Source of the DNA: Salisapilia sapeloensis CBS 127946
Lineage: Eukaryota > Protista > Oomycota
Direction: 5' to 3'
NCBI GenBank assembly: GCA_023334545.1
Contig: JAADVB010000087.1
Location: 2,103-66,102, forward strand
Length of the DNA stretch: 64,000 bases
Position 1 is the stretch's first letter. The number at the start of each line of letters is the position of its first letter. A model generated the notes under the pieces. That model was not told the origin of the DNA. It did no database searches and saw only the letters and a program-made list of their open reading frames with translations. Both the position numbers and the translations under genes were made by a program. This document shows, in pieces, positions 22,247-40,932 of this stretch.

Positions 22247-22465
22247 CGTTAAACTTTTCCGCATGTCGTCGTAGTTAGTAAGACGTACAGCATCTTACAT
22301 TAGCACTCGTGGTGCGTATATCGGGACAAGCGAATCAGAACTCGCCACCGGAATTTACGGTGGCAGAGCTTTAAACGGCGCGTAGTAACCTACTTTCGAA
22401 GGCAGCAATGCTTACTTATTACTCAATCAGAAGATAGCAAAGAACTTGAATCACCTGTCTAAGAC

Positions 22466-23035
22466 ATGGGGAATTCCATTTCGAGCTATTTATCTTCTCC
22501 ATTTGCATCGTTATCAGCGTGCTGGAGTAGTCACAAGCATCAAGTATTTATTTTCGGCCTCGATAATGCTGGGAAAACCACTCTTTTGTATCAACTCAAG
22601 CTCGGTGAAGCGGTCACGCCGATCCGGACCGTTGGCTTTAATGTGGAAGATATTCGATGTAATGGCATAGTCATTCAGGCATGGGATATCGGTATGACGT
22701 GTCAGATTCGTCCATTTTGGCAGCATTACATGATTGAACCAGGTGTAGCCGTCTTCGTTGTTGATTCCAACGATCGTGAGCGACTACACGAAGCTGCATC
22801 AAAACTGCACGATATCCTTTCATACGACAAGTTAAAGCATTTTCAGCTCCTGATCCTCGCTAACAAACAGGACCGAGATGGGTGTATGACCGTGCCGGAG
22901 GTTACCAAAGGTCTGCATCTGGAAGATCTAATGCACAACGAGTACAAGGTGCGAGGTGTATCCACACTTACTGGTGATGGTGTTACCGAAAGTCTCGAGT
23001 GGATTGTGTCTGCCCTCCAAGGACAAGAGGCATGA
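22466..23035 (+). CDS. Divergent ARF-family small GTPase, copy 2
   Basis: MGNSIS, GLDNAGKT, RTVGFNVE, WDIG, IRPFWQHY, VDSNDRER, NKQD. Intronless, 189 aa, colinear with copy 1. Confidence 0.92.
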   Translation: MGNSISSYLSSPFASLSACWSSHKHQVFIFGLDNAGKTTLLYQLKLGEAVTPIRTVGFNVEDIRCNGIVIQAWDIGMTCQIRPFWQHYMIEPGVAVFVVDSNDRERLHEAASKLHDILSYDKLKHFQLLILANKQDRDGCMTVPEVTKGLHLEDLMHNEYKVRGVSTLTGDGVTESLEWIVSALQGQEA

Positions 23036-23135
23036 GGCCAACGGTCAAATGCAACTTTATGAATGCAAAGTAAAGTTTAGACAAACAATTTTTCTTTTCC
23101 TTCTTCGCAATGCAGATCCACTTGAGCTAAAGCTG

Positions 23136-23978
23136 TCAGTAAGCCTCGTTGACATTGATCGTGGACTCACGGGATGGCATGGCCATACTGTCGCGAATCG
23201 CCATGGTAGAAATACTCTCCCGAGACTCGGCACTGCCCGTCCGCTTCTTCTTCCGCTTGTACACGCATGTCTCCTTATCTATTCTAATGCCCCACTGGAA
23301 GTCATCCGCTTTCGTCACGACATCCAGGAACTCATTCAGTTTTTCAATGCGGTCTAGAATCAACTGATCTGAGAAGAAGCCTGTCAAGGATTGTGTCTGG
23401 AGCTCTGGGATCTCATGTTCACGTGCTGGATTTTTTGCTTTCAATGTCGCTGCCAAATTACTATTGAGTCGTTAGTGATACAGATTTAGGAATAGATGGG
23501 TGCAGAGAGTCGTACAGAAAAGTGCTGTATCGATGCCAGAGGACCAGTGTGCCTCGAATGTCTGTTTCGATCTGGAGTTTGTACTCGACGTACTGCCGTC
23601 CTTGCTTTGTTTTGATGCGACTGGTAGCGTACATACTGTTAGGGTCTATCTATGATCTACGGCTAGTGGGATTGGATACCTGTCCACGACTTTGGCGGTG
23701 AGTAGTGAGATTTCCCTCATTTGATCAATTTTGCCCTGGTACGACTCGAGGGTCTGTCGTAGCTGCACGTGTTCCCGACGTAGATCCATGCTGGCGTTCT
23801 GCATGGCGTTGTTCAGAATACTTTGTCTTAGTCGTTCATTCTCTTCTTCCAACTCCTTTTTCTTCTCCAATGCCTCCGAGTGCTGAGACGTGTACATCTT
23901 GACGGCTTCCTGTGCCTTGGTGAGTTTGCTCTCGGCATCGGCCAAGACGCGCTCCGTGCGTTTCGTAGGAGTGCCCAT
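23136..23978 (-). CDS. Stand-alone coiled-coil plus PX-domain protein, paralogous to the tail of the myosin at 27730-31295
   Basis: Introns 23621-23679 and 23461-23515 join three exons into ...EISLLTAKVVDSRIKTKQGRQYVEYKLQIETDIRGTLVLWHRYSTFLNLAATLK...EIPEL...DRIEKLNEFL...QWGIRIDKETCVYKRK. Confidence 0.88.
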
Positions 23979-24264
23979 TGATATGCTGTATTGTTGCGAT
24001 AGGACGCTTCTGTGTGTAAAAGTCCTCTACCGTCCAAACAAGTCTTCTTTTCGCGTGCTTCGCGCTAGGAATCCCCAAAGTCGCGACTTTCGGAAGGAAA
24101 TGAAAAGGAAGAAAGCCGAGGAGGTTACTGTCGAATACGACGGACTTGCTGCTCGCGCTCGTATGGCTTGGTGGGTACTGTCGTGACAAGAGCGCTCGAA
24201 AGGTACAATCGAGCGAGCGTCCCAAATATGCCAAAGTCTGTCTCCCTCAGCTCAAAAAGTCAGT

Positions 24265-24845
24265 CTATGTGCGGCTGAAAGTTGAGCCAATTGGTGGTTT
24301 CTTTGCGGTACAAGCAACCAATGAGCAATCGATAAAGTGAAACCTACCCCCTGTACAAGGAGCACTTGGCTTGAGTATGCAATGAGACGATGGAGACACC
24401 TGCCAACTGGATAAACTCCTGCGATGTTCGACGACAAGGTGCTCGACGCGTTGTAAAGGATCTGGCGATGCGGAAACAGATCTGTTTATCACAAACTGGG
24501 ATGGACAAAGAGCGCTGTTAAAAAGACAAATAGGCAAAGGACGTATTGGCCAGAATTCTATTAACATGAGATATCTGGGTGTCCATTGGGTACGACCCTT
24601 GACATGCCTCTGCCGTTCGCCACAGATAAAGCATTTGTAGCGACGAATTGGTTTGTATACTATCCTACATTTAATCCTGCAATGCAAGCTTTATCTTCAG
24701 TTATCTCCGCGCTTTCCTCGCATGTAAACAGCGTAATGGCGCACAGTTGGAATATCGATTGATGATCTCCCTTTTGCGTGCATTTGTCACATGTTGTCGT
24801 CGTAGTTATCGTCTTGTCAGCGATTGACCTGTTGCATACTCCCAA
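24265..24845 (-). CDS. Hypothetical Cys-rich protein, possibly spliced (unresolved)
   Basis: Two overlapping minus-strand ORFs can be joined by a 59-nt GT-AG intron and contain GVCNRS...TCDKC. No clean start codon and no recognised family. Confidence 0.3.
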
Positions 24846-25304
24846 CTTGTCTACCGTGTCTTAATAACGAGCTTGTCGCAGGCATACAAGTAATTTTCGT
24901 GTCACCTAGAGAAGTGCCTGAGTCCAACTTCAATACCACTATGCACGTACGCGATCAGTTTTTCACTACCACTGCATCGATTATTGCACACGTAACGCTA
25001 GCAGCAAAACTGTAATGGAAGTAGAAATGTAGCTATCTGTCATTTGTGTCATGATCACTTCAAGTGAAGTTCAACGCGTCGTGAGGTACATATCCTACTA
25101 TACCATTCAGATCAAGACAAAAACTATCAAACGCGTGCCAATGCGTGGCAGTTTCCAATCAGTAGAAATGGAGCATGGCACCGGCCAATTCCAGAGCAGT
25201 TCCGAGACGATTACCTCTTGCTTCGGGCAACATACTCCTTTCGAACAACTTTCTCGCAACAATTCGACACAAAAACATGCCAAGATGCCTAACTTGTCAC
25301 CAGA

Positions 25305-27494
25305 ATGATGGCACAGGAGATCGAGATGGAGGCCATTCGGAAGCGTACGGGGGATGTTGATCCTCCATTACCAGAAGAGATGGATAGCGAAGAGTCGGTT
25401 CCTTTGACCACTACATTGCTTGACGATGAGGATGACGACGACATACATAAGAAGACTCAAGTCAAGCAGTCAAAAGGCATCTACCATCTCCTCGCAACGT
25501 CCATTCCTCGACTAGTCATTATTGGCTGCTTGTCCTCTATGGTGCTACTAGCATTCTTTATCCGATGGCCTCTGTATTACTCATCCGTCTTCCCGTCTTT
25601 GCTCGCTCTCCTTGGTGACGGCCAACGGGCAGAGGTCGAGCCACTTGCCGTCTCGGTTGCATTCATTCTACCTTTCGTCCTTGGTGGTCTAGTCTATTAT
25701 GCTCAAGAAAACTTTATCAGGGTGTCAAGACAGCACAAAGTAGTGCCATTGCATCACGGTCGCTGGCACGACATTCGCCAATTGACCAACTTTCCAACTT
25801 TGGACTCCATCGACCTGATCTGTGGTGCGAGCTTTATTTTGCTGCAACTCAATTGCGTTGCTGGCAAGGTTCTCTACGACCACTACAACGGAAAGCTAGC
25901 AAAGAAAGGGCTCATGAATCGCGTCGGTAAAGCTCTTGGCATGAATGGCCTCTTGTGCATCTGTCTCGCCATCTTGCTCGTCTCCCGCTCCTCTTTCCTC
26001 CACAAGTTTCTGTCATTCCCAGCCGAACGAGCTTCCAAATACCATGTTTGGAGCAGCAACTTTGGATTCGCATGTTTCAGTCTACATGGATTCATATACG
26101 CGATCGACTGGTATCAGAAGGGGGAGCTACAAAAACAGCTTATTCCGTGCTTTACTTGTGAATGGATTGATCAGTACCGTGCACTACGCAACTTTAGTGG
26201 CACATTATCCTACGTCCTTCTTGCCATTGTCTTTTTAGGCTCCTTAGAAGTTGTCCGACGTAAGCATTTTGGTCGATTCGCATTGATCCATTGCGTCAAT
26301 GTGCTCTTCGTCACCTTTGGATGCGTCCACTACTACCCACTCGTCTTCTGGCTTTCTCCTTGTGTCATTGCATACACATGCTATCGTCTGTTATCTTTTT
26401 TCCGTCGGCAGAAAGCAAGTGTCGTGTCCTGTGCATCCATCTCGAACGACGTGTTACAGCTAGAACTTCGACGAGAAGCCACTTCCGGTGACTTTAGACC
26501 AGGACAGTATGTGTATTTACGAGTAGCTTCCGTAGGCCGCTCGTGGCATCCGTTCTCGATTAGCTCCAGTCCTTTACGCAACCGTAGCTCGCTCCAAGTG
26601 GATGCCAAGGTCCAGGGCCCATTTACGACCAAGGTCTTGGAGCTCGTTCGTGCGAATCAACTACAGGCCGTGGATGTCGATGGATACTATGGTTCTGCGT
26701 TGTCTGTCTGTCCTCACTTGGTTCTCATCGGCGGAGGAAGTGGTATGACGCCATTCTTGAGTTTGTTGGAGCATCTTCAGTACGTTTCGGAAGGCAAGGT
26801 CGGAGATGTCGAGCTTCCCAAGACGATTTGGGTAATCTGGACGAGTCGAGATGACCAGTTCTTGGAAGCACATCACGAACTGCTTTATAAAGTGCAGCAG
26901 TCGAGCCACTGGCAAAGCAAAATGTGGCTGCATGTGACATCCGAGAGTGACGGTGGTATCGATCGCTATCGACCGAAAGCATCGGGTCGATATGCTTTTT
27001 CGCCAGCATTGAGTCAGAGTGCGTTGGGACTCTTCTTTGCTACGAGTTTGGGTGCAATGGCGTGTATGGCTGTTGCCTACTGGAACCACAGCATCAACGA
27101 ATTGTGGTATGTAAAGAGAGCATTCTTGTTTGTAGCTGTCGTGGTGGGAGCCGTGGTTTCTGGCAGTGTAGTGCTGTATTTCGTGGGTTCATCCAGTCCG
27201 AAACCCAGTCAAGAGAGAGTGGATGACTCCAAAGCACCCTTCGCTCCCTCTACGCCACAGAACTCCGCGAAAACCAGCTCCTTGCATCATCACTTCTCCG
27301 TTCAAGCGACTCGACCAGATTTCGCTTCGACTCTGCCACTCATCCATGCTGACATCCGCGAACTCTATGGACCCAAAGCAGACGTCCGCATCTACGTCTG
27401 CGGTCCTCACAGTCTTCAGCAGTCGGTTGTCCAGCACGCCAGCAAGCTGTCTGGGCCGCTCTTCCCCGTGCACAAGAAGAGCTTTGCCCTGTGA
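25305..27494 (+). CDS. Ferric reductase / NADPH-oxidase family flavocytochrome
   Basis: Two pairs of heme-ligating His (YHVWSSNFGFACFSLHG; IHCVNVLFVTFGCVHY), FAD motif WHPFSISSSP, VDGYYG, NADPH motifs LIGGGSGMTPF and IYVCGP. Confidence 0.92.
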   Translation: MMAQEIEMEAIRKRTGDVDPPLPEEMDSEESVPLTTTLLDDEDDDDIHKKTQVKQSKGIYHLLATSIPRLVIIGCLSSMVLLAFFIRWPLYYSSVFPSLLALLGDGQRAEVEPLAVSVAFILPFVLGGLVYYAQENFIRVSRQHKVVPLHHGRWHDIRQLTNFPTLDSIDLICGASFILLQLNCVAGKVLYDHYNGKLAKKGLMNRVGKALGMNGLLCICLAILLVSRSSFLHKFLSFPAERASKYHVWSSNFGFACFSLHGFIYAIDWYQKGELQKQLIPCFTCEWIDQYRALRNFSGTLSYVLLAIVFLGSLEVVRRKHFGRFALIHCVNVLFVTFGCVHYYPLVFWLSPCVIAYTCYRLLSFFRRQKASVVSCASISNDVLQLELRREATSGDFRPGQYVYLRVASVGRSWHPFSISSSPLRNRSSLQVDAKVQGPFTTKVLELVRANQLQAVDVDGYYGSALSVCPHLVLIGGGSGMTPFLSLLEHLQYVSEGKVGDVELPKTIWVIWTSRDDQFLEAHHELLYKVQQSSHWQSKMWLHVTSESDGGIDRYRPKASGRYAFSPALSQSALGLFFATSLGAMACMAVAYWNHSINELWYVKRAFLFVAVVVGAVVSGSVVLYFVGSSSPKPSQERVDDSKAPFAPSTPQNSAKTSSLHHHFSVQATRPDFASTLPLIHADIRELYGPKADVRIYVCGPHSLQQSVVQHASKLSGPLFPVHKKSFAL

Positions 27495-27620
27495 CGCTTC
27501 AAGATCCGCCTATCTGTACCCACACTGGAAAGTCATACATTGCCACTTTTATCCCGACCCCTATCGTTGCGTTGTGTTCGTCTCTTGGTGTTTGTATGTA
27601 CGAAGTGCTGTGCGATCGTA

Positions 27621-27631
27621 TCTGATTGGCT
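27621..27631 (+). promoter_or_regulatory. CCAAT-box-type element (TCTGATTGGCT) upstream of the myosin gene
   Basis: Reverse-oriented CCAAT in the TYTGATTGG context typical of oomycete promoters, ~100 bp upstream of ATG 27730. Confidence 0.5.
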
Positions 27632-27729
27632 CCTTTTCTGTCTCGAACGTGCACTCGACGAAGGGGAGCACCTCAGTTTTAGCGTCCTCGAGCGCCCTTC
27701 TCGACCGAGACACAAGTACAGTGCGAGCG

Positions 27730-30700
27730 ATGGCGGAAGACAGCATGCTCAGCGGCGGTGCCATGGTATGGGTGCCCCATGAAGACAAAGTTTGGAAGAG
27801 AGCAGTCGTGGTGAAGCGCCTGGACGACGGCGAGTCGGCCGAAGTCCGGCTCACTTCGACCAGCGAGGACGAGGCGCACCGGGACGATGGCGAGGTGCGC
27901 GTCGTGAACATCGCGAATGTGGCTCGCCTCGCCGGTGAAACCTCTGAAGAAGCCATGCCGATCTGCAACAGCTTCGACGCGAACGGCGTGGACGACATGA
28001 CGACTCTGAACCATTTGCATGAGCCGGCCGTCTTGAAGAACCTCGAGCTGCGCTTCGCCAAGCAGAAGCCGTACACGTACACCGGCCAGATCTGTATTGC
28101 TGTGAACCCGTACCAATGGCTCGACCTCTACGGCTCTGTATGTTTCCATCTATCTTCTATACCACCTTATCTTCCTCGTACTGACTATCTCTTCTCCAGG
28201 ACCTGTACGAGAAATTCCTAACACACAAGCGCGATGAGCTTGATCCCCACCCATTCGCACTCTCCGCGACAGCTTACAACGACATGAAGCGTACGGGTAT
28301 CGACCAATCGATCCTTGTCTCTGGCGAATCTGGCGCCGGCAAGACGGAGACGGTCAAGATCATGATGCACCACTTGGCCAGTGTATCTGGCGGTGGCGAC
28401 CAAGGCACAGTTGTCATTGAACAGGTGCTAAAGTCCAATCCATTGTTGGAGTCCTTTGGTAACGCCAAGACGAAACGTAATGACAACAGTAGTCGATTCG
28501 GCAAGTTCGCCCAGCTCCAGTTCGACTCATCTGGCGCTCTCGTCGGGGCGTTGTGTGAGACGTACCTTCTGGAAAAGTCTCGCGTCGTTGGCCAGGCCGA
28601 TGGCGAGCGCAACTACCATATCTTCTACCAGGTTTTCCGACTCGATGAAGAGAAGAAACAAGAACTCAAGATCCACGGTACAGCCGCCGACTACCGCTAC
28701 ACCCACACTGGCGCGGATGCGGATATCGTCGGTCTCGATGACGAGGAGAGCTTTAAGGAAACACAAGACGCCATGAACACGATCGGCATCTCTGCAGACG
28801 AGCAGCATGCGATCCTCCAGATCGTCGGAGCTATCCTCAACCTCGGAGAAGTCTCGTACAAGGAGCACGCGTCGGACGAAAACAAATGCCATATCAAGGA
28901 CGAGTCGCTCGTCCAGGCAGTGGCCGACCTACTCCAGATCAACATCGACAGCCTCACGTCGACGCTGCTGGAGCGTAGCATCACGGCCGGTAGCGAGTCG
29001 TACACGATCCCTCTGAACTCGGAGCAGGCGCAGGACCTTCGTGATGCTCTGGCGAAGGGTATCTACACTCAGCTCTTTGACTGGCTCGTCCACCGCGTCA
29101 ACCGAGCGATTTGCTCCACGAGGAACGCCGTGCGTCACATTGGACTGTTAGATATCTTTGGGTTCGAGTCGTTCGAGTCGAATGGATTTGAGCAGTTGTG
29201 TATCAACTACGCGAATGAAAAACTGCAGCAAAAGTTCAACAGTGACGTGTTCAAGGTCGTGCAGGAAGAGTATGTCGAAGAGGACATTCCTCTCGCTCTC
29301 GTCACGTTCGAAGACAACCAGCCGATCCTGGACCTTATCGAAGGACGCATGGGTATCGTCTCGCTGCTGAACGAAGAGGTGCTGCGGCCACAAGCTACGG
29401 ACACAACGTTTGTGCGCAAGATGCTGGACGCCTGTAATGACCACCCGAGTGTGGAAAAGTCTCGTTTCAGCCAGCTGCAATTCCTCATCAAGCACTACGC
29501 CGGAGACGTGACATACAATGGCGAAGGCTTCCTGGAGAAGAACAAGGACTCGATGCCGATGGACATGGCGCAGCTCCTGTCATCTTCTTCGAGCTCTGTG
29601 ATCTCTGGCATCTTTAACACCAAGTTGGAGGAAGACAAGAAGAAGCAGAAGAACAAGAAGGGAGGAAAGGGACGACAGCAAGGGTATCTTGTCGGAAACA
29701 CCGTCGCTGGTGCCTTCCGAAAGCAACTGCAGGAACTCATGGAGACCATCAGCAAGACCAACAGCCAGTACGTTCGCTGCATCAAACCGAACGCGAACAA
29801 GAGTCCGGTCGAGTTTGACAGGCAAATGATCGTCGAGCAGCTAAGGTGCGCCGGTGTCATTGCCGCCATCCGCATCAGTCGCGCCGCCTTCCCCAACAGG
29901 CTGGGTCTGAACGAGTTCCAAGAGCGCTTCCAGATCATCTGTCCGTCGTCTCTACGTGATGCCGCGCCGCAGGAGATGGTGATGGGACTGCTCAAGGAAC
30001 TTCTTCCAGAGAGCGGAGACGACATGAAGAACTCCAAGTTCGCTGTCGGTAAAACCAAGGTTTTCTTCTCCTCTGGTCTCCTCCAGCAGCTAGAGAACCG
30101 TAGGAACGCCATGTTGATGGAATATGCCATCATGGTCCAGAAGATCGTACGAGGCCACGTCCATCGTCAGCGATTCCTTCGCCAGCGAACTCTAGCACTC
30201 AAGTGCCAAGCGTTCGTGCGCTTCGCCACGCAGCGCCGCAAGTACATGACGATGAAGCGAGGTACGATCCAGCTCCAAGCGCTGGAGCGTGGACGCAAGC
30301 AGCGGATTGTGTATAAGGAGATGCTGGCGGAGAAGGAGCGCCAGCGTCTAGCAGAGCTCCAGCGTCAGCAAGAGCAGAGACGCCAGGAAGAGCTCCAGCG
30401 ACAAGAGGACGAGCGAAAGAGACGTGAGGACGAGCGACAGAGGCAGGAGGAAGAGCAACAGAGACTGTTGGAGAAGGAGCGGTCGGCTCCGGAGCCGGAG
30501 CCTGTAGAGGCGTCGGACAATGGCTACGACGACCTGAGCGACGAAAGTGACAACGAAGACAACGGCCCTGTCTCGCCTCGTACAATGCGCACGCTTACAG
30601 ACGCTGCGTCCAAGGTAGCAGAAGCAGAGGCTGCTGCACGAGACGCCAAGCAGGCGGCCGAGTCGGCGCTCCACATCAACCAGGACTTGGTCTCTCAGAA

Positions 30701-31295
30701 CGACCGTCTGCGCTCGACGCTTGCATCCAACGTTGCCGAGTATGCCGACGCGGAGCTTTTGCGTGAGAACGAGCGCCTGAAGCAGCAGGTGACGCAGCTC
30801 CAGGCGAAGCTTGTTCGATCGCAGGAAGTGTCTCTCATTAGCGCCAAGGTGGTGGACAGCCGCATCACGTATCGTGAAGGACGTCAGTTTGTCGAGTACA
30901 AGCTGCAGATCGAAACGAATACGCGTGGGACGTTGTACGTCTGGCATCGATACAGCACGTTCCGCAACTTGGCTGCGACGCTGCAGACCAAGAACGGGTA
31001 CAAGCGAAAGGAGATTCCGGAGCTGCCGAACAAGCAGCTCTTTGGCAACTTTTCGGAAAAGATCATCCAGGAGCGAGTGGAGAAGCTGAACCAGTTCTTG
31101 GAGGCTGCAACGAATGCAGAGCACTTACAGTGGGGTATTCGAGTCGACCAGGACACGTGCGTGTACAAGCGTCGCGTGAAGACTGCGAATCCGAGGGATA
31201 CCATATCGACCGCGTCGACGAGCTCTTCTCCGAGAGCTTCTTCCCGACTGTCGAAGGCCTTTAGCTTCCGCCGTGGCAGTACCGCTGGGAATTAG
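27730..31295 (+). CDS. Myosin heavy chain with IQ motifs, a charged helix, coiled coil and C-terminal PX domain
   Basis: N-terminal SH3-like region, DDMTTLNHLHEPAVL, YTYTGQICIAVNPY, one intron (~28138-28198), P-loop GESGAGKT, NDNSSRFGK, LLDIFGFE, YVRCIKPN, about three IQ-like motifs and the PX core WHRYSTF...IPELPNK...ERVEKLNQFL. Confidence 0.95.
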
Positions 31296-31397
31296 GAAAT
31301 GAACGAGGATTGTTTTTTGCTTTTGTATGTGCAGATTGGTTTGGCGGTTAAGGAAAAATAAAAGGAAAGAGCAAAACGGATTGCATTTGTCTTTCGA

Positions 31398-31907
31398 CTA
31401 GGCCGTGCGGAGGATGATGTGGACGCCACTGTCCGACTCGACGATGTCGCTCAGCTGGCCAGGCTCCAATGCAAACGCAGCTTCTTCAAAAGGCTTTTGC
31501 ATCATGCCACGGCCGAAGGGACCGAGGTCTCCGCCACGCGTTCCGCTGTGCATTTTTAGGTATGGCTAGAGCAGGATTATAGTAGGCAAGGTACCTGTTG
31601 CAGTCGCTGTACTGCGTGGCAAGGTCCTCGAATTTCGCTTGACCGGACACGATGGATTCACGCAAAGCTAGACAAGTTCATACAATCAGAATATGATGCT
31701 AACTTGATTAGCGATAAAGTGTACATTTGAGTTGCTCGATGGCCTCTTCCTTGGAGCGCGTGATGTTGTTGGACAAACGGGAGGCTATGGAGTAGATAGA
31801 GACATTAGAGCGAGAGATTCAGACTAGTGCCGAGGCTGGGTACCTGGACGACGAGAGCCGCTGTGCTTGATGAGCAGGTGGGAAGCGCGGATTTGGTCTA
31901 TAGACAT
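31398..31907 (-). CDS. PIN1: Pin1-type parvulin peptidyl-prolyl isomerase without a WW domain (4 exons)
   Basis: Spliced: [36 protein letters not shown]...[61 protein letters not shown]. Confidence 0.93.
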
Positions 31908-32420
31908 GAATGCATTCGTAGAAAGTGTAAGCACACGACCATGGCGTTCAATAGAGGTAAAGGAGTGACGGCGTGCAGGTACCTGACATGATCTCTTTTG
32001 ATTTTGATCGGTACCAAGATATGTTTCTCTTTTTGGCAATTTGACGCTTCTGCAGCACATCGTTAAATGCGCATAAAGTATTCTTCTATAAAACAGAAGT
32101 TTACTTTTATTTGTGCTTTAGCATTTGCCTTCCGCAGTACTGGATCTGACGGCATATAGAAATTAGCGTGCGATTTACGCAGAGGTTGAGCTTGCTAAAG
32201 ATGGACTACAAAGGCAGGCTTGGATGAAACTTTAGTTTAGTATAACTCCATGGACTAAAGTCTTTTCGTCTTAAATTGTATTTGTAGGGCATATCTAAGA
32301 CGAAAGTAGTGAAGTTATCTACCAATGTAGACGTTTAATACTACCAAATAATCGTCGAATCTTTTGTTAGGCTTGTAAAGTCAAAATACGCTCCGCCGGG
32401 AGCTTTGAAAAAGAATAGCT

Positions 32421-33425
32421 CTAGCGCGATAAGAACTGTTGCCTTTTAGCATCCTCTCTTATGACATGATCAATCCATGAATGTACATCCGATACACGGA
32501 GAAAAACGGCGGGGGCGACTCCGCACATATTGTCTGTACCTGACGCAATTCCAATCTGTCTTCCACCATACATTAATGGACCTCCTGAATCTCCTTTGCA
32601 TATTCCTTTTTGAGGTTTCTGTTGATGCTTTCCAAGGCCGCTACCGGCGCAAAAGTATTCAAAATGGACTGCGTTGTCAAACCACGACTGACAGGATTTC
32701 TTGGGCTGAAACTTTAGTCGCGTGTGCTGTAATAAATCTGGATACGTGTAGTACATTGGTTTGGCGCTTCCCTGCCACGTACTTTGAATTGCACCCCAAC
32801 CATATGCGTCCGTTTGAGATCCAAGCCAGCGTGGACGCTCCTCTGGATTATTACGTATTGTATCGTACTCGACAAAGTGATGATACTGTGCAGATACGCT
32901 ATGACGAAGCACCAAGATACCTGCATCGAAGGTAGGCATAGAGCTTAAACTCTTTCGGGAAAAGAGCCGATGTACCTTCACTTTGCTCACTTCAATCTGT
33001 TCACCAGAGTCAGCCCCACTTCGGAGGTTGGTCCCAATGGAAACATATTGTCCTTTTCTGGGCACATGCCCCACATACTCCCCATCTTTATTCCAGACGT
33101 ATCTAGTTACGCAATGTGCTGCTGTCAACACAAGTCGACTTGTTAAAAGCGTTCCACCACAGGCATTTATCCCTTGCCTTGTGGCGCGTATACCTACCAT
33201 GAAAGGGGCCGCTTCCCATCGGACAGTTTTTCCATCGAAAATGCGGTTTACATCGCCTTGTGTCGAGATAGGATCGACTTTGCTCATCATGTTTACATCA
33301 GAAAAATTTTGAAGTATCTCGCTGTTCATCATGTTCAAAAATTCTGCTGTACAGGCTCCGAAGCATAATGCGGGCAATACGATGACCAAAACGACAAGGT
33401 GGTGTACACGTCTGCTTTGTATCAT
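32421..33425 (-). CDS. Secreted chymotrypsin-fold (S1A) serine protease, copy 1
   Basis: Signal peptide, propeptide, activation-like site R|IFDG, CGGTLL, LTAAHC (His), FDAGIL (Asp), CKGDSGGP (Ser). The catalytic triad is intact. Confidence 0.93.
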   Translation of the reverse strand: MIQSRRVHHLVVLVIVLPALCFGACTAEFLNMMNSEILQNFSDVNMMSKVDPISTQGDVNRIFDGKTVRWEAAPFMVGIRATRQGINACGGTLLTSRLVLTAAHCVTRYVWNKDGEYVGHVPRKGQYVSIGTNLRSGADSGEQIEVSKVKVHRLFSRKSLSSMPTFDAGILVLRHSVSAQYHHFVEYDTIRNNPEERPRWLGSQTDAYGWGAIQSTWQGSAKPMYYTYPDLLQHTRLKFQPKKSCQSWFDNAVHFEYFCAGSGLGKHQQKPQKGICKGDSGGPLMYGGRQIGIASGTDNMCGVAPAVFLRVSDVHSWIDHVIREDAKRQQFLSR

Positions 33426-34192
33426 TTAGTCACTGCGTGTTTGCTTGATCTAATACGAAAATGAATATGGTTTCTGTATTAACTAGGCGTATGCGATATG
33501 CTATCCATCAATACAGTGACAATATTCAAGGATATGTCATCCCAATAAGTGGTAAAGTTGTCTTTTACAAAGTGGCCGGAGATTTTATCGCATACTCGTT
33601 TACTTGATTTGTTTTTCCCGCGACTGTCCACCATATGTGGTAGAGATCCAGCTTGCAGAAAACTAAACTAGTGGCCAATTTCAGTGCATTTATCATTAGT
33701 AAACAATAAACAAGTCATAGTCGGTATTTGTGTGATGGAGCATTAGATAAGAATTAAGGAGGCGGACGTTTCAGGTGAAAATAGGTCAGATCTCAGCTTT
33801 TGGCTTACTTGATGAGGAAATTGATCATTGTATTTCTTTAGTAGATGTATCCTCCAAAATGCTCGACCATAATATTTTGGCTTTAATGCTTGGAGTAAGC
33901 GCAGTGAAACCGAACTTGTCCATCTACAATTCAATTATAATGACATTTTGTCCATAGGGCCAATTACACAAATGATGGGCTCATCAATGGTACTGTGACT
34001 TGATCAAGTTTTGAACTGTATTAGACTACATCGTAGTTCTGCAACCGACCATTGCAGAAGGGATGATAAAATCCTTATGGACATGACTAGTAGGGGTTTC
34101 AAAGTTGTTAAAACTCACCTTCTGAGTTCATGTCTTGAGTACTGACATTCTGGTTGAACGCTTTCTTAACTTTTCATCCTATAATCCCAAAT

Positions 34193-34212
34193 AGCTACCT
34201 CTAGAGGTAGCT
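34193..34212. repeat. Perfect 20-bp palindrome AGCTACCTCTAGAGGTAGCT
   Basis: The sequence equals its own reverse complement; it lies in the non-coding gap between protease 1 and the kinase pseudogene. Confidence 0.8.
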
Positions 34213-34586
34213 GGTTTGAAAATACCGGATCTTGATGCTGTGAAAGGTCCAGTAAGTCTGCCGGCCAGTGAAGCTAATCATGAACACAGACTAATGATAA
34301 TTTCTGCGCGATCTTTAAACTTTGACTCTCCCTAATCTACGGATAACTTTTGCTTGATGTGCACACTTTGACTCACCCTAATGCCGGCCAAGTATTCGTT
34401 TACTGCCGCAGTCAACGATCCTACGACAAATTCGACGTACCAGAGGGGTATTTGCATGACAAGTACAAACTAGGTTTCCATGCATGAATGAAGCCAGTCT
34501 CGAACGGCATTGTGTAACATCGATAACGCTTTTAGGCATCGTATAGAAAATAGAGCTTTTCAATTCAATCTATGTCGTCTTCATTT

Positions 34587-37102
34587 TCATTCGAATGTAA
34601 TACTACTGTGGTACGATCCATTCTTCACCAATTCGTGGAAGTAGTATTGGATCTGTGCAGCAGTCGGACGGTCTTCCGGGAGATTTGACAGGCACTTCTC
34701 TGCCAACGAACGAATCGATTTAGGGCATGCTTTTGGCAATGACGGGCGAAGGCTGCCTGAGGACATCTTATTCGCAAGAGACAGCACACTTCCTGCATGG
34801 CTATCATCTCGGACAACGTCGTAATACGGAAGTTCATGCGTTGACAGTCCGTCAGTATGACACCCAACGAGTACACATCACAGGCCTGTGTGTAGTGCCC
34901 TTCTTCTCTTAATATCTCGGGAGCCAACCACCGGACTGTCCCCACGCCTTCGACCGCCATCGTATTAATATCATGCTCTCGAGCAGTTCCACAGTCGCTC
35001 AGCTGTGCTAACATCGATCCGCTCAGCAAGACGTTGAGAGACTTGAGGTCTCGATACAGCAGTGGAGGAATAAACGAGTGGACCTATGCGAGTGCCTTGA
35101 CGATGTCAAACGCAATATGAAACTTTTCATCATTCCATTCCGAACGACAGGAAGCTTTCTGGAGATAGTTTCTTGAATCTCCGTTCTCCATATACTCAAA
35201 TAGCGCCTGGAAGTCAGTGCGTTTGGTCCACGCAGCTCCAACGAGTCTCAAAACGTTCGGGTGCTCGAGCGATGCAACGAGTTTTATTTCTGCAATAATA
35301 TTTTAGATCTCGTTGGCACTCTTTTTCTCTTCACGGATCCGCTTGGAGGCGTATAACTCGCCGAGGTATTCGACCAACTAAACTACACCGAAAGCACCTC
35401 CGCCGAGTTTTTGAAGATCTCGAATGTCGCGGATATTCAGCTGGATATTGATCAGCTGCTGATCGCTCCAAATTGAGCTGTCTTCTTCCATCTTAACCCC
35501 TGCATTTGCTGCAAATGTCGGTGAGCTGGCCTCCGCGTAGTTTAAAGAGCGTGTCTGCAGCGATTTAACTTGATTTCGTCGCTTTACGAAAAAGTAGGCT
35601 AGAGCAGCGATGATGACTCCGACTATGACGGTGGTGACGATGATATAAACGACAGTGGATGAAGATGAACCATCTCATTCAATAGCTATGTTGGCTGAGG
35701 AAGAAGATAGTGCTGTGTCGTTGGTGTCATACTGGCTTGAGGCAGCTTTTTCACTTATGCAAACTGCGAAATCGGTAAAACGAACGTTTTTAGCCTCTCC
35801 ATCCGGACAGTCTGGCGTATCGTTTCCAATTTCATAAGGATTTGTGTAAATGGTTTTGCTTATCACTTCAAAAAGCGCGGGAGACACCGTTCGTTCGATT
35901 AATGGATTGCTACCCAAGTATCTACACGCAAACACTGTCTTAAATTTCTTATCGTCTCCAACTAAAAGAGGTAGGAATACAGCTCGCAAAGGTTGTGCAT
36001 GCTGGCGATGGCTTATGGAGTTTTCCCAATGAGTTATTAGGTAAATGCCTGTAAATACAGCATTAACATTGTGCCATGTCACTTGGTACATGGGAGTACT
36101 TACAGATATTGAAGGTTAGTAAATTCGCCTTCGAAAGGTCCCAGGTCGTTGAAATCTAATCTACTACGCATAGATCAGAATTGTCAGTTGGCTCGACGGT
36201 GAAATTGCATAACTATATACTTGCAGTTGGACAAGGCTGCCAAGTCCCATCTCGGCAGGATAGCTTTTGATATAATTACTCTGCAAATACCTATTAATTG
36301 ATTTCAGTTTTTATGATAACATTATAGATTAACCATGACGATGCACTTACAGAATTCTGATGTAAGTCGCTTGCGATACGTACGGCATTTCTTGGAGTTG
36401 ACAATTGTTCATGGTCAGTATTTTTAGCTCAGAAGGCAGGTCTACTAGCGATGGCGCGTCTTCAGAAAAGCCAATATAGCGGAACTTGACATTCACAACA
36501 GAATTTTCATGGGAAAGTGTTTCGTCTGAAAATTTTACACTAACACCCTTTTTCTTCACGCTATAATTGCATTCATATCCGCACAATATCCTATGTTGCC
36601 GAGCTTAGTGTCAGTTAGCGATGAAATTCATAGTGTCCTACCATCCCTCTACGCTGGAGCTAAAATGAAGATCAACTGCATCGAGATACTTGTCATCGAG
36701 ATGAGGGGAGTCTGGCTTGAAATCGTTTATGGTATCTTCGAAAGTGACAACGAAGGTGAAGGATTCAGATGAAGATGAACTCAAGAACAGGGTAAAACAT
36801 TGTTACTGGTAGTTTAAGTCTGTGTCTGCTTCCTGGCATTTGCTCCATGTGTCTTCGCTGTCCTTAATGTCTTCTGATATAACATTACGATTGCACGGGT
36901 TTTTATCGTTGATATTATAAATAACGCAAGCGTCATACCCCTCATATTCGCCGTGACAATCTGGTTGCATGAGTAGTGTGCTGGTGGCAACAAAATCGCT
37001 ACCATCATTGCTCAAGCCATCGATGCCCAGAATCCTCCCTGCAAGGAAATGTAATAGCAGGACAAATGCAGAAACCATTATTGGTTTTGTGCTGTTGTTC
37101 AT
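34587..37102 (-). pseudogene. LRR receptor-like tyrosine-kinase-like (TKL) kinase pseudogene
   Basis: Signal peptide (from ATG 37102), Cys-rich N-terminus, LRR-like exons, TM helix VVYIIVTTVIVGVIIAALAYFFVKRR and a kinase domain (LGGGAFGVV, LEHPNVL, RDLKSLNVLL, GTVRWLAPE, DVYSLGVIL). In-frame stops at 35378-80, 35303-05 and 35084-86, plus a 1-bp frameshift near 34848. Confidence 0.9.
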
Positions 37103-39136
37103 CGTCTCGCTTCGTTGTACGTAGTGAATACCAGCTCGCTCTTTATACTCTAAGTCCAAATGACTTTACAGATCCCACGGTAGATCGAATTATCGCAGGA
37201 GTTTCGAGAGAAGTGCTGATGTTTAATTTTAACTGTGCAGTGTCCATAACTGGACTTCACCTTCATTCCACAGTTACGCATTTGAGACATTTTGAAGTAT
37301 AATACTAGGCACGGGTTATTCAAGCACCAGGAGTCGTTTCTACAAACAATTCTTGTCAACAGACACATCGAGAAGAATCGCATGGACTCATAATCGCATA
37401 ATGAACCTAAAGCATACATTCAACTCACCTTAAGTTATCGGATAAATAAGACACTCACAGGCTGTCACTTACTTGCAAACATATACTATAATCGCTTGGT
37501 GTACAGCAATTAAAGCGAAACGTAGCCTATCTAATGTTTATCCACATGACGCTCCCTTCTTTACTAGACTTACTGGATTCTTCCATAGAGTGCCCTCTGG
37601 GCATTCGCGCGAGCTCATATAGCCTTATAACGATAACTTGAAATCTATTTAAAGATCACTTGCGGAAAGCTTATGCTGTGAGATGCCTTTATCAGAAAGC
37701 CAGTGTAGCTGGCCTTCCGAAGCTCAACGGATGAATAATCAGTAGATAGCAAAAAGTAGTAAATTTGCCATTCCGTAAAATCTTAGGTGACTGTAAGCAC
37801 ATCCTTTGGATGGCGCGAGCAAGACGAGTGCTCCTCACTTCCCAAGTAGCGGCAGTCAGAGCAAGAGGGCTTGGAACAAGAACTTAGTACAAAGTTACCA
37901 AACAAGACACTGTATATTTGTGTTCGGATATCAAGTTACTATTGCCTATCATCTATCCCTGATTGAAGCTCTTGTATGAAAAATCTTTTTATAAAAACCT
38001 GTGATGATGCCATATTTATACTTTTTCAAGTTCACAAATTATGAGAGCATCACCATCGGTTGGACCTATAAGAGGTCTTAACGCGGCCTTTTGGACCTCA
38101 AAAATAAAATAAAAGCACGAGCATGGTCATGCTTCCCACCGGCAGAGTTTCATATTTTTGTGGTGCTGGATATTAGTGATTGCTACTTAGTTTTAAATAA
38201 GACTTAACGCAATATGAAACATTTTTCTTCTGTAAGGAAAGAGCATGCAAGTTCCTCTATCTCCGCCACTGACCATTCCGTTCCTTTTCCCATTTTGCTT
38301 TCTTTAAATGAATTATCCTATTGCACTGCTATTTTGAAAGCATGCCTGGTTAAGTCCAGACATATCGAAGACTTTAGGTCGCAAACTCAGAAATTTAAGA
38401 CCTCCGCAGGTAAAAACCCCTCTTAAGACTGATGGGTGCACACGTACTTGGCTTTAAAACTGGCAATAGGCCTGACCGGTGATGATGCTCTGAACGATTG
38501 TAGAGCATTGCGCCTTCTCTTTATTTGCCAGCATTGTGTTTGGTAGTTATGTCGGCTATCGTGCGCTCAGTGCCACTACTGTGCGCAACGATAACTATAG
38601 AATGACAAGACGTATCCTACAATATAGCCCACTGTTTGTGGAATCCAGCTATAGGTTAGATGCCAACGGATCGTTTAGAACCATCATTGCTGTGACTTTA
38701 TTAAAAAAGACACTCTCGGATATGATGCGACTGAACTGCAGGTAAATATGTCTACAAAGCATGACTGAACTTCATCCGACTAAAGTGCTGAATGAAACTG
38801 CATAAAATTAGCAACTGGCAAGTCTGATGACTACTTTGCAAGCATGGGTGTCAATTGAGTATGATGCGGAAAGAATTTGTCAAACGGAGCAATTCTTTTA
38901 TGTATGAATTACGATGCCAAGCAAAGTGGAGGTTTTACGCAAAACTACCGCATTTCTGTATACGTTATTATCTATTCTACTTAAGCTTGAGTTGTATGAA
39001 TCGTGCCCAAAAAGCTGACAGAAACATATGTTACCAATTTAGATGTTTCCTGCAACCGAGTGACGGTGTAGTTTTTATTTCAACTTATCTGATACTCCTC
39101 TCTCCACCTTAAAGATTATAAAAAGGATGATACTAT

Positions 39137-40159
39137 TTAACCTGCTAAGAAATCTTGCCTCTTGGCATCTTCGTTTATCACATACTCAATCCATGCGTAT
39201 ATGTAAGATACACGAAGAAAAATACCAGGAGCCGTTCCGCACATTTCACCGGTCGCTACAGAGATCCCAATTTGTCTCCCATCATACATTAATGGACCAC
39301 CTGAATCCCCTTTGCATATCCCTTTTTGAGGTTTTTCATGAGACTTCCATGTACCTTTACCAGCGCACAAGTACTCGAAATGAATTGGACTAGTAAACCA
39401 GGACTGGCACGCTTTCTTTGGTTGAAACGTTAGCCGCGTGTGCTGCAGTTGGTTTGGGTAGGAGTGAGATATAAAGTCATCCGTTCCCCGCCATGAGCTT
39501 TCAACTGCGCCCCAGCCATACGCATCCGCCCGAGACATCCGCCAGAGTAAATGACTCTCTCGATAACTGCGTATTGTATCGTAATCGACAAAATGGCGAT
39601 ACCGCTGGGATACATTATGGCGAAGCACAATGATCCCTGCATCGTACTCACTTATAGAACGGCCATCGTTTTGCTCAAAGTATGGGTGCACCTTAACTCT
39701 GCTTACCTCAATCAGCTCACCAGAATCGGCGCCGGTCTTTTCACTGTTTCCAATGGAAACATACAGGCCTTTAATCGGTACAAATCCCGCATATTTTCCA
39801 TTTCGGATTCTGGCTTCAGCTACACAATGGCCTGCAGTCAATACAAGTCGGCTTGTTAGCAGCGTTCCACCACAGACGTTTGCTCCTTGCCTCGATTCAC
39901 GTATGCCGACCATGAAAGGGATGCTTTCCCATCCAATAGTTTTCCCGTTGAAAATTCTGTTTTCATCGTCTTGAGTCGAAACAGAGTGGAGTTTGACCAT
40001 CGCGTCCGCATCCGTTCCATCTCGGAGTGTCTTTCTTTTGATTCCGCTCAAACCTTCAACAGAAGATACTCTGAGGCATATTGCCATCAACAAGATGATC
40101 ATCAAGTTAAAGGGGAGAACACTTCGACTTTTCATCGATTTAGTGCTTTGCTTTCGCAA
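39137..40159 (-). CDS. Secreted chymotrypsin-fold (S1A) serine protease, copy 2
   Basis: Signal peptide, R|IFNG, CGGTLLTSRLVLTAGHC, YDAGII, CKGDSGGP. Colinear paralogue of 32421-33425. Confidence 0.93.
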   Translation of the reverse strand: MRKQSTKSMKSRSVLPFNLMIILLMAICLRVSSVEGLSGIKRKTLRDGTDADAMVKLHSVSTQDDENRIFNGKTIGWESIPFMVGIRESRQGANVCGGTLLTSRLVLTAGHCVAEARIRNGKYAGFVPIKGLYVSIGNSEKTGADSGELIEVSRVKVHPYFEQNDGRSISEYDAGIIVLRHNVSQRYRHFVDYDTIRSYRESHLLWRMSRADAYGWGAVESSWRGTDDFISHSYPNQLQHTRLTFQPKKACQSWFTSPIHFEYLCAGKGTWKSHEKPQKGICKGDSGGPLMYDGRQIGISVATGEMCGTAPGIFLRVSYIYAWIEYVINEDAKRQDFLAG

Positions 40160-40932
40160 ATATAATAGAGAACGGGATTAGCCTCTTAATCGCAACCACT
40201 ACACGATATATACCATCCACAAAAACAGCCACGATATCCAAGGACATAGCATCATAAATGAGTGGTAACCTTGCTTTTTATACCTGAACAGTGTCTTCGT
40301 CGTGTACTCGTATAATTCATTTATGTTTCCTTCGAGTGTCCATCATCGGTGGCCAAGCTTCAAGCTTCTAGAAAACTAAAGTAACGACCAAAGTCAGATG
40401 CACCATCCGTTTGTAGATAAGGAAAAAGTCAGAGCTGGCATTTGCGTCTACTAAAGCATTAGTCCTATATCTAAACTTGTTTTGAGTATTTTGCGTTATG
40501 CAGGTCCACACGAGTTCAGTCAACTGTATAGTCCAATAAAGGACTTCTCAGATCATGAAGATGACAAATAATATGTCCTGTTTTGATCCACGGTATCGAT
40601 CGGAAAACCCTGTCCATGAATATTTGTGGACTGTGAGAATGGAAACTTCTGCCATGTACGTCGGTGTACTTGATTCTAAATCAATAAATTGAGTTCCTAG
40701 ATACATTTGATGGGTTAAATCGACTATCAATCGAACTTAAGGTGTGATTCGAAAGCTGGCCTAAGCTCAACTTAATTTCACACATTCCTAATAATCAACC
40801 TTTCAAAAGATTCTACCTATCTAACCTATTCGTTCTTGTAAGCAAATTATGCTACTCTACGTCTCTATCTCTATGTAAATTGCAAATAGAAAGCAATTTC
40901 AATTGCAAATAATTGTATACACGTATATTTCT

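Follow-up and report, generated by a model that had tools for sequence, protein, structure and literature searches.

Myosin tails that occur without their motors have been described in plants and animals. A headless tail of myosin XI-K is encoded in Arabidopsis and Brachypodium by its own gene, HDK, the product of a partial duplication (Peremyslov et al. 2011, as recounted in PMC3935558). Headless Myo10 is likewise motor-less and consists of a coiled coil and a lipid-binding tail (Sousa 2006 and Raines 2012, as summarized in PMC6345916). The class-XXX myosins of the oomycetes Phytophthora and Hyaloperonospora combine an SH3-like N-terminus, a motor, a pair of IQ motifs, a coiled coil, and a PX domain (Odronitz & Kollmar 2007, PMC2375034), and were likewise treated by Sebe-Pedros et al. 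2014 (PMC3942036). Here, we analyzed a 64,000-nucleotide stretch of the oomycete Salisapilia sapeloensis CBS 127946 (contig JAADVB010000087.1; the whole stretch is called the window, and its positions are used throughout), in which a small stand-alone gene (SA) on the minus strand lies near a PX myosin gene on the plus strand. SA is transcribed separately and encodes a paralogue of the tail of this myosin. It is an ancient motor-less tail paralogue with a remodelled PX pocket, and we lean towards reading it as an adaptor that would act in the same cargo pathway without canonical binding of phosphatidylinositol 3-phosphate (PtdIns3P).

SA is a three-exon gene that runs from an ATG at 23978 to a TGA at 23136–23138. 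Its coding sequence measures 729 nt with the stop codon and encodes 242 aa. The features of the gene are as follows:

23071..24246, minus strand: SA transcript; 3′ untranslated region (UTR), three exons, and a 5′ UTR of ~190–270 nt without upstream ATG (contigs X1–X3)
23680..23978, minus strand: SA exon 1; Met1–Asp99 plus 2 nt, long helix/coiled coil
23621..23679, minus strand: SA intron 1; 59 nt, GT..AG, removed in contigs X1, X2, X3, and X5, position kept in the orthologous loci L001–L009
23516..23620, minus strand: SA exon 2; 34 full codons, PX strands beta1–beta3 and the Arg-Tyr pair
23461..23515, minus strand: SA intron 2; 55 nt, GT..AG, spliced in transcript contigs, position kept in orthologues
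23136..23460, minus strand: SA exon 3; remaining PX domain, Ser-rich C-terminal tail, and stop codon

Transcript evidence was drawn from public RNA-type assemblies, three from the same organism as the window (X1–X3) and one from a related, ~95% identical organism (X5). The SA contigs of X1–X3 (983–1052 nt) matched the window along their entire length and lacked precisely 23461–23515 and 23621–23679, which confirmed that SA has two introns where the myosin tail has none. They started at 23071 or 23081 and ended at 24167, 24213, or 24246. Upstream of SA, contig depth was zero at 24300–24499 and almost nil up to 25290. Reading of the sequence revealed neither an in-frame start codon upstream of 23978 nor an ATG in the 5′ UTR. 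Because the contigs stop 190–270 nt 5′ of the ATG and no in-frame start codon lies farther up, SA is an independent, expressed gene that starts at 23978 and has no motor exon joined to it. An initial annotation of this DNA had called for a 5′ end near 23978 without upstream motor exons, and this is what the contigs delivered: they lay wholly within 23071–24246, and none reached an upstream exon.

SA and the myosin were both expressed in the same three RNA assemblies. The depth of the SA contigs equalled or exceeded that of the myosin contigs in X1, X2, and X3, a measure that is unsuitable for ranking expression. In X5, the SA transcript was spliced as in the window, and 14/17 of the listed differences in the coding sequence were synonymous and 3/17 non-synonymous, an excess that indicates purifying selection on SA. 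An explanation that denies SA a gene of its own, as a pseudogene fragment or as the terminal exons of a larger motor gene, is highly improbable. It is at odds with abundant spliced contigs that end short of any further exon, with the near absence of coverage at 24300–25290, and with a depth at least that of the myosin in three runs, as well as with the intact frame, the conserved N-terminus, and the 14:3 ratio of synonymous changes.

Some further observations concern the SA transcripts and the start of the protein. The X5 transcripts for SA, the ferric reductase gene, and the myosin (23100–28299), from 2025 runs, were ~95% identical to the window and had identical splice junctions. Their source is a close sister species or strain, which could be used to estimate ratios of non-synonymous to synonymous substitution rates (dN/dS). 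On its 3′ side, within the region 22388–23460, SA converges with the second of two ARF-like genes, on the plus strand, and the transcript contigs of the two genes abut or overlap at 23071–23100. In X2, both were merged into one 1662-nt contig. N-myristoylation of the conserved Met-Gly start of SA was considered and ruled out with a PROSITE-type pattern: a small residue is expected at motif position 5, and residue 6 of SA, which occupies it, is Lys or Arg.

The relationship between SA and the myosin was established by BLASTP of each SA exon against the myosin open reading frame (ORF). The matches were gapless and collinear over ORF residues 761–966, with 35/98 identical residues for exon 1 (E 3e-12), 25/34 for exon 2 (74%, E 1e-16), and 40/72 for exon 3 (E 5e-27). 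With the two split codons counted, 101/206 residues (49%) were identical overall and ~51% of the aligned residues differed. Identity was 36% in the coiled coil and 56–74% in the PX domain. The corresponding part of the myosin gene is:

30564..31181, plus strand: myosin tail segment homologous to SA residues 2–207 by exon-wise BLASTP; intronless

The initial annotation had described the two tails as matching almost residue by residue. The register is indeed gapless, and the matching strings that it quoted are all present, but at 49% the identity had been overstated. This moderate identity implies an old duplication. No Pfam match to the myosin head was found in the SA exons or in the SA orthologues, and the closest non-orthologous matches of similar length were tails of the same PX-myosin family. 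The proposal that SA is a motor-less paralogue of this myosin's tail was therefore upheld for a separately transcribed gene, as was the spacing of ~3.7 kb between the two (ATGs at 23978 and 27730, 3,751 bp apart). Both proteins end in a Ser/Thr-rich, low-confidence C-terminus (23139–23249 on the minus strand for SA, 31182–31292 on the plus strand for the myosin). These tails have a conserved R-E/D-S-I-S-T motif in common, and the myosin additionally contains F-R-R-G-S; we presume that both motifs are possible basophilic-kinase sites.

The myosin tail and an SA orthologue, used as queries in word-based searches, retrieved orthologues of 237–316 aa from Phytophthora, Nothophytophthora, Bremia, Peronospora, Peronosclerospora, and Hyaloperonospora, and also from Globisporangium, Pythium, '[Pythium] brassicae', Lagenidium, and Albugo. 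At least 12 genera were represented, with mutual identities of 66–91%. Databases name these proteins either 'myosin-like protein' (Phytophthora infestans T30-4 XP_002907997.1) or 'PX domain-containing protein'. SA exons 1, 2, and 3 were 50–75%, 94–100%, and 66–78% identical to the orthologues, respectively, and exon 2 was identical at 34/34 residues in 17 of them, including those of Albugo candida, Pythium, Lagenidium, and Phytophthora. The orthologues begin at the same Met, and 12 align from their own residue 1. Both SA intron positions fell at the same codons in 9/9 orthologous loci, and the myosin tails are intronless. No SA orthologue turned up in Saprolegniales or outside the oomycetes by word-based search, the only search type used.

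In trees of the tail region, the SA orthologues formed one clade (100/100) with short internal branches, separated from all myosin tails by a stem of ~2.8 changes per site. Judged from these branch lengths, the history of SA is one of a burst of change followed by constraint. Sequence comparison dates the duplication to before the ancestor shared by Albugo, Lagenidium, Pythium, and Phytophthora. The SA clade joined the tree close to where the myosin tails of the peronosporomycetes begin to branch, with a support of only 71/96 in a tree without outgroup.

Other motor-less derivatives of the tail were also observed, namely two-PX-repeat proteins adjoining the myosin in Pythium and Phytophthora and three-PX-repeat proteins in Aphanomyces and Saprolegnia (multi-PX derivatives at L003:1–1937 and L008:405–2144; proteins P0012, P0013, P0016, P0024 (~400 aa), P0049, and P0066). 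The window contains no two- or three-PX-repeat derivative. Saprolegnia parasitica is predicted to encode the small PX proteins SPRG_08014 and SPRG_08017 (P0046 and P0047; 247 and 236 aa), which clustered with one Saprolegnia PX-myosin tail outside the SA clade and whose contig holds two PX myosins. Their position suggests independent tail-only duplicates in Saprolegniales.

The structure and Pfam tests of SA were run on full-length orthologues, with P0032 (75–100% identical per exon to the SA of the window) serving as the model. Full-length orthologues scored 22.2–24.3 bits for PX (PF00787), just over the gathering threshold of 21.6 bits; the SA exons of the window, scanned singly, gave no PX match, the domain being spread over three exons. 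The AlphaFold2 model of P0032, built from a 20-orthologue alignment, had a mean predicted local distance difference test score (pLDDT) of 74.5, and of 81–93 over residues 91–190. It showed helices at 4–60 and 64–88, strands at 92–105, 108–119, and 124–130, and further helices at 131–144 and 166–185. Foldseek matched this model to PX structures with E values of 3e-6 to 1e-3, and the matches included SGK3/CISK (E 3e-6, target template modelling score 0.67–0.70), p40phox, and the SNX16 PX-coiled coil. The C-terminal part of SA is thus predicted to be a PX-fold domain. The tail of the myosin was modelled with a similar fold, in which a helix at 6–88 precedes the PX domain.

Binding of PtdIns3P by PX domains needs an Arg-Tyr pair, the Lys of the PsiPxxPxK (PPK) loop, and an Arg in alpha2. 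No binding of PtdIns3P was seen for those human PX domains in which any one of these four residues is missing, and the canonical binders constitute groups II/IV (Chandra et al. 2019, PMC6449406). The PPK loops of the two genes are:

23391..23411, minus strand: degenerate PPK-loop motif IPELQTQ of SA; canonical Lys replaced by Gln, second Pro by Gln
31014..31034, plus strand: canonical PPK-loop motif IPELPNK of the myosin PX domain, from the translation

At the four positions, SA has R130, Y131, Q158, and R172, with Gln in place of the canonical Lys, and Q156, T157, and Q158 were invariant in 20/20 orthologues. In the myosin, these positions are occupied by R130, Y131, K158, and R172, which, together with P153 and P156, did not vary among 21/21 tails. 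When the SA profile was aligned to SNX3, the lysine of P-x-K fell on Gln. The best solved-structure match of the myosin PX profile was the KIF16B PX domain (E 1.8e-6), in which P-x-K aligned with IPELPNK. In total, 28 family-specific fixed switches distinguished SA from the myosin, including L135R, H150K, Q156P, and Q158K (SA residue first). Besides the lysine of the PPK loop, four further basic residues around the pocket are gone from SA. The fixed switches that remove basic residues there are R135L, K150H, and K167Q (myosin residue first) and the change of YKRK to SSEH. The net charge of the pocket segment 130–172 is +5 in the myosin and −1 in SA. These substitutions are fixed, and canonical PtdIns3P binding has most likely been lost from SA. 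Even so, of the 101 positions with a conservation of at least 90% in each of the two families, 73 were identical, including the surface QWGIR.D.DT.VYKR after alpha2 and the sheet motif VEYKLQIET. The simplest reading is that SA kept further surfaces, which probably bind proteins.

The pocket bears directly on the suggestion in the initial annotation that SA and the myosin compete for the same membranes. SA would in that case be a tail-only competitor or dominant negative on the PtdIns3P membranes of the myosin, displacing the motor. The same domain order, the gapless homology of the tails, and the expression of both genes in the same three RNA assemblies fit this idea, as do two precedents: headless Myo10 was proposed to dimerise with Myo10, to compete for cargo, and to mask phosphoinositides (as summarized in PMC6345916), and over-expressed myosin XI tails inhibit the full-length motor (as recounted in PMC3935558). 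However, the canonical lysine is Gln in every SA orthologue and four more basic residues are lost, whereas the PX domain of the myosin keeps all four binding residues, and PX domains lacking one of them did not bind PtdIns3P in the human survey (PMC6449406). The ~51% of residues that differ, together with the long stem, also point to a changed function and not to a simple copy. Of the variants considered, such competition is the one that we favour least; SA is probably not a simple membrane competitor, and we rate this explanation as unlikely.

The helices of SA and the myosin that precede the PX domain both show a heptad pattern. Hydrophobic a/d residues are shared at positions 12, 19, 43, 50, 54, 66, 73, 77, 80, and 84, and an invariant Asn47 at an 'a' position is common to both. 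Other core positions are fixed differently in SA and the myosin (Y29/A29, K40/N40, H70/N70, and M87/S87, respectively), and the N-terminal half of the myosin coiled coil has an invariant Ala-rich core that SA does not have. SA could be pictured as a dedicated light partner, which would form a coiled-coil heterodimer with the myosin; the resulting motor would have a single head, and of its two PX domains one would be canonical and the other degenerate. The gapless alignment of the coiled coils, the sharing of most hydrophobic a/d positions and of Asn47, and the conserved linkage of the genes speak for such a partner; the differently fixed positions 29, 40, 70, and 87 and the absence of the Ala-rich core from SA speak against it, and we regard it as improbable to a similar degree as the membrane competitor. 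A stricter version would make SA the obligate second chain of the PX myosin, giving one head, one PtdIns3P-competent PX domain, and one remodelled PX domain that reads a second signal. This is a long shot. If true, the second signal would be a protein or a ligand other than PtdIns3P, the motor would be a coincidence detector, and the long-kept linkage would reflect a need for balanced dosage.

SA is separated from the myosin by a ferric-reductase/NOX-like gene, which the initial annotation had passed over in describing the pair. The features of these two neighbours are as follows:

25305..27494, plus strand: ferric-reductase/NOX-like gene between SA and the myosin; 729 aa, contigs from 25293/25346 to 27638
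27730..28137, plus strand: myosin exon 1; 136 codons, SH3-like N-terminus and motor start
28138..28199, plus strand: myosin intron; 62 nt, GT..AG, removed in X1, X2, X3, and X5
28200..31295, plus strand: myosin exon 2; motor, two IQ-like motifs, coiled coil, PX domain, and Ser-rich end

The transcript of the myosin begins at 27615 and has its first ATG at 27730, where the protein starts; the gene ends at 31295, with one intron and 1167 aa. Pfam matched Myosin_head at 675 bits, PX at 44–46 bits, and Myosin_N at 21.3 bits (under the cut-off of 27). The P-loop, switch I, and switch II of the motor are intact, and two IQ patterns were found at ORF residues 618 and 664. The tail was 84–91% identical to the tails of named oomycete myosins. 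The product of the ferric-reductase/NOX-like gene matched the Pfam domains Ferric_reduct, FAD_binding_8, and NAD_binding_6. Its 3′ UTR overlaps the 5′ UTR of the myosin at 27615–27638 (gap region 27494–27730), and in X2 and X3 a single ~6.1 kb contig covered both genes. Annotations of Lagenidium and Pythium oligandrum likewise merge the ferric reductase with the myosin, into models of 1657 and 1704 aa (L007:3018–9738 and L008:2486–9097). These fusions stem either from genes packed so tightly that assemblers and gene callers join them in error or from genuine read-through transcription.

The linkage of SA and the myosin, first noted in this genome, is kept in several oomycete genera. In four oomycetes, namely Pythium insidiosum, P. 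oligandrum, Globisporangium splendens, and Lagenidium giganteum, the genes follow one another as rotamase or PX gene, myosin (−), ferric reductase (−), SA (+), and dynein heavy chain (−). In downy mildews, SA and the myosin are immediate neighbours: in Peronospora destructor both are on one strand, with SA 2.3 kb upstream of the myosin, and in Peronosclerospora sorghi they have the adjacent locus tags 005621 and 005622. Adjacent locus tags were also found in Pythium insidiosum. In Phytophthora infestans, Bremia, and Albugo candida, no myosin was seen within 10 kb of SA; in the first and the last of these, the dynein gene has stayed next to SA in convergent orientation.

In the window, the rotamase gene (31380–31938) and SA are anti-collinear with Lagenidium, and the dynein heavy chain gene (~40.9–54 kb, minus strand) is collinear. 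Because of this, the rotamase–myosin–ferric reductase–SA block is read as inverted in the window. An AT-richer island with a protease and a dead kinase (~32–41 kb) between the block and the dynein gene marks one breakpoint, and the tandem ARF pair adjoining SA lies at the other (window 23071–40925). The adjacency of the ARF genes to SA had been taken to suggest a small trafficking module. Elsewhere in oomycetes, a dynein heavy chain gene occupies that side of SA. It was the inversion that brought the ARF genes next to SA; their adjacency is therefore lineage-specific, and the comparison lends the module no support.

Gene order also feeds a serious rival, in which SA is functionally unrelated to the myosin, being sorting-nexin-like or tether-like, and its proximity is a relic of tandem duplication kept by general synteny. 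The ferric reductase, rotamase, and dynein neighbours are conserved equally well, and three of the lineages sampled have no myosin within 10 kb. SA is divergent from the ferric reductase gene and not from the myosin, with which it has no promoter region in common. The long stem, the 28 fixed switches, and the changed pocket are all in keeping with an unrelated role. Against it, 73/101 doubly conserved positions are identical, including whole surface motifs outside the pocket, which suggests a retained common partner, and rearrangement has not parted the two genes, either in the downy mildews or in the inversion of the window. We consider an unrelated role possible, if on balance doubtful.

We come down, by a modest preference, on the side of SA as an adaptor in the cargo pathway of the PX myosin. 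SA arose by a local duplication of the myosin tail no later than the Albugo–Lagenidium–Pythium–Phytophthora ancestor; it diverged fast, has remained near-constant since then, and has mostly stayed a few kb at most from the myosin. The ~85-residue coiled-coil-type helix, PX-fold domain, and Ser-rich end of SA would make a dimerising, non-motile coiled-coil/PX adaptor. This adaptor may be linked to the myosin by protein-binding surfaces that both have in common or via the homologous coiled coil, and not through the same lipid.

Several points weigh against this adaptor. Conserved synteny is common in oomycete core genomes, and linkage alone is no argument for a functional pair; moreover, the linkage within 10 kb is missing in the three lineages named above. 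The protein used for predicting the fold was the orthologue P0032 and not that of the window itself. SA retains an invariant Arg-Tyr pair and alpha2 Arg, so that some phosphate-containing ligand could bind, and the avidity of a dimer could compensate for a weak pocket. The four-residue rule itself was derived from human PX domains (PMC6449406).

Oomycetes include major crop and fish pathogens, and to our knowledge hardly anything is known of the regulation of their many unusual myosins. SA is a conserved 'headless myosin' paralogue of an ordinary kind, and the discovery is modest, as headless myosin derivatives are already known in plants and animals. The protein is already in databases, and no description of its family was found in the literature searched (including the terms D0MV84, XP_002907997, EEY61080, and PPTG_01652, and PX with Phytophthora and myosin). 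What the present analysis adds to an unstudied entry is its identity as an expressed, conserved paralogue of a class-XXX-type PX myosin, ancient and mostly found beside its parent, with a fixedly remodelled pocket. The combination of great age, wide distribution, synteny, and a remodelled ligand pocket sets this oomycete family apart. The PX domains of SA and the myosin also form a natural pair whose folds are near-identical but of which only one has the canonical lysine.

Compared with the systems described to date, the myosin of the window resembles class XXX in that every architectural element is present, with the SH3-like domain at its N-terminus below the Pfam cut-off. The class-XXX label is given by architecture only, and class XXI also includes PX myosins. 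As a motor with a C-terminal PX domain, the myosin also resembles the kinesin-3 KIF16B. At the level of the fold only, with 15–28% identity, the SA model superposes on the PX domains of SGK3/CISK and p40phox and on the SNX16 PX-coiled coil; SA is without the PPK lysine that the aligned SNX3 and KIF16B carry. Like headless Myo10, SA is motor-less and combines a coiled coil with a tail of lipid-binding type. Headless Myo10, as summarized in the source above, is an alternative transcript with a tail identical to that of the full-length protein, whereas SA is a separate gene whose pocket differs from that of the motor. HDK is alike in that it is an independent gene, derived by partial duplication of one particular myosin, whose product is confined to the tail. 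HDK, in the account cited above, is a recent, narrowly distributed duplicate of a plant class-XI tail. In contrast, SA is a PX tail found in numerous oomycete genera (peronosporomycetes); its identity to the parent is ~49%, and its pocket is remodelled.

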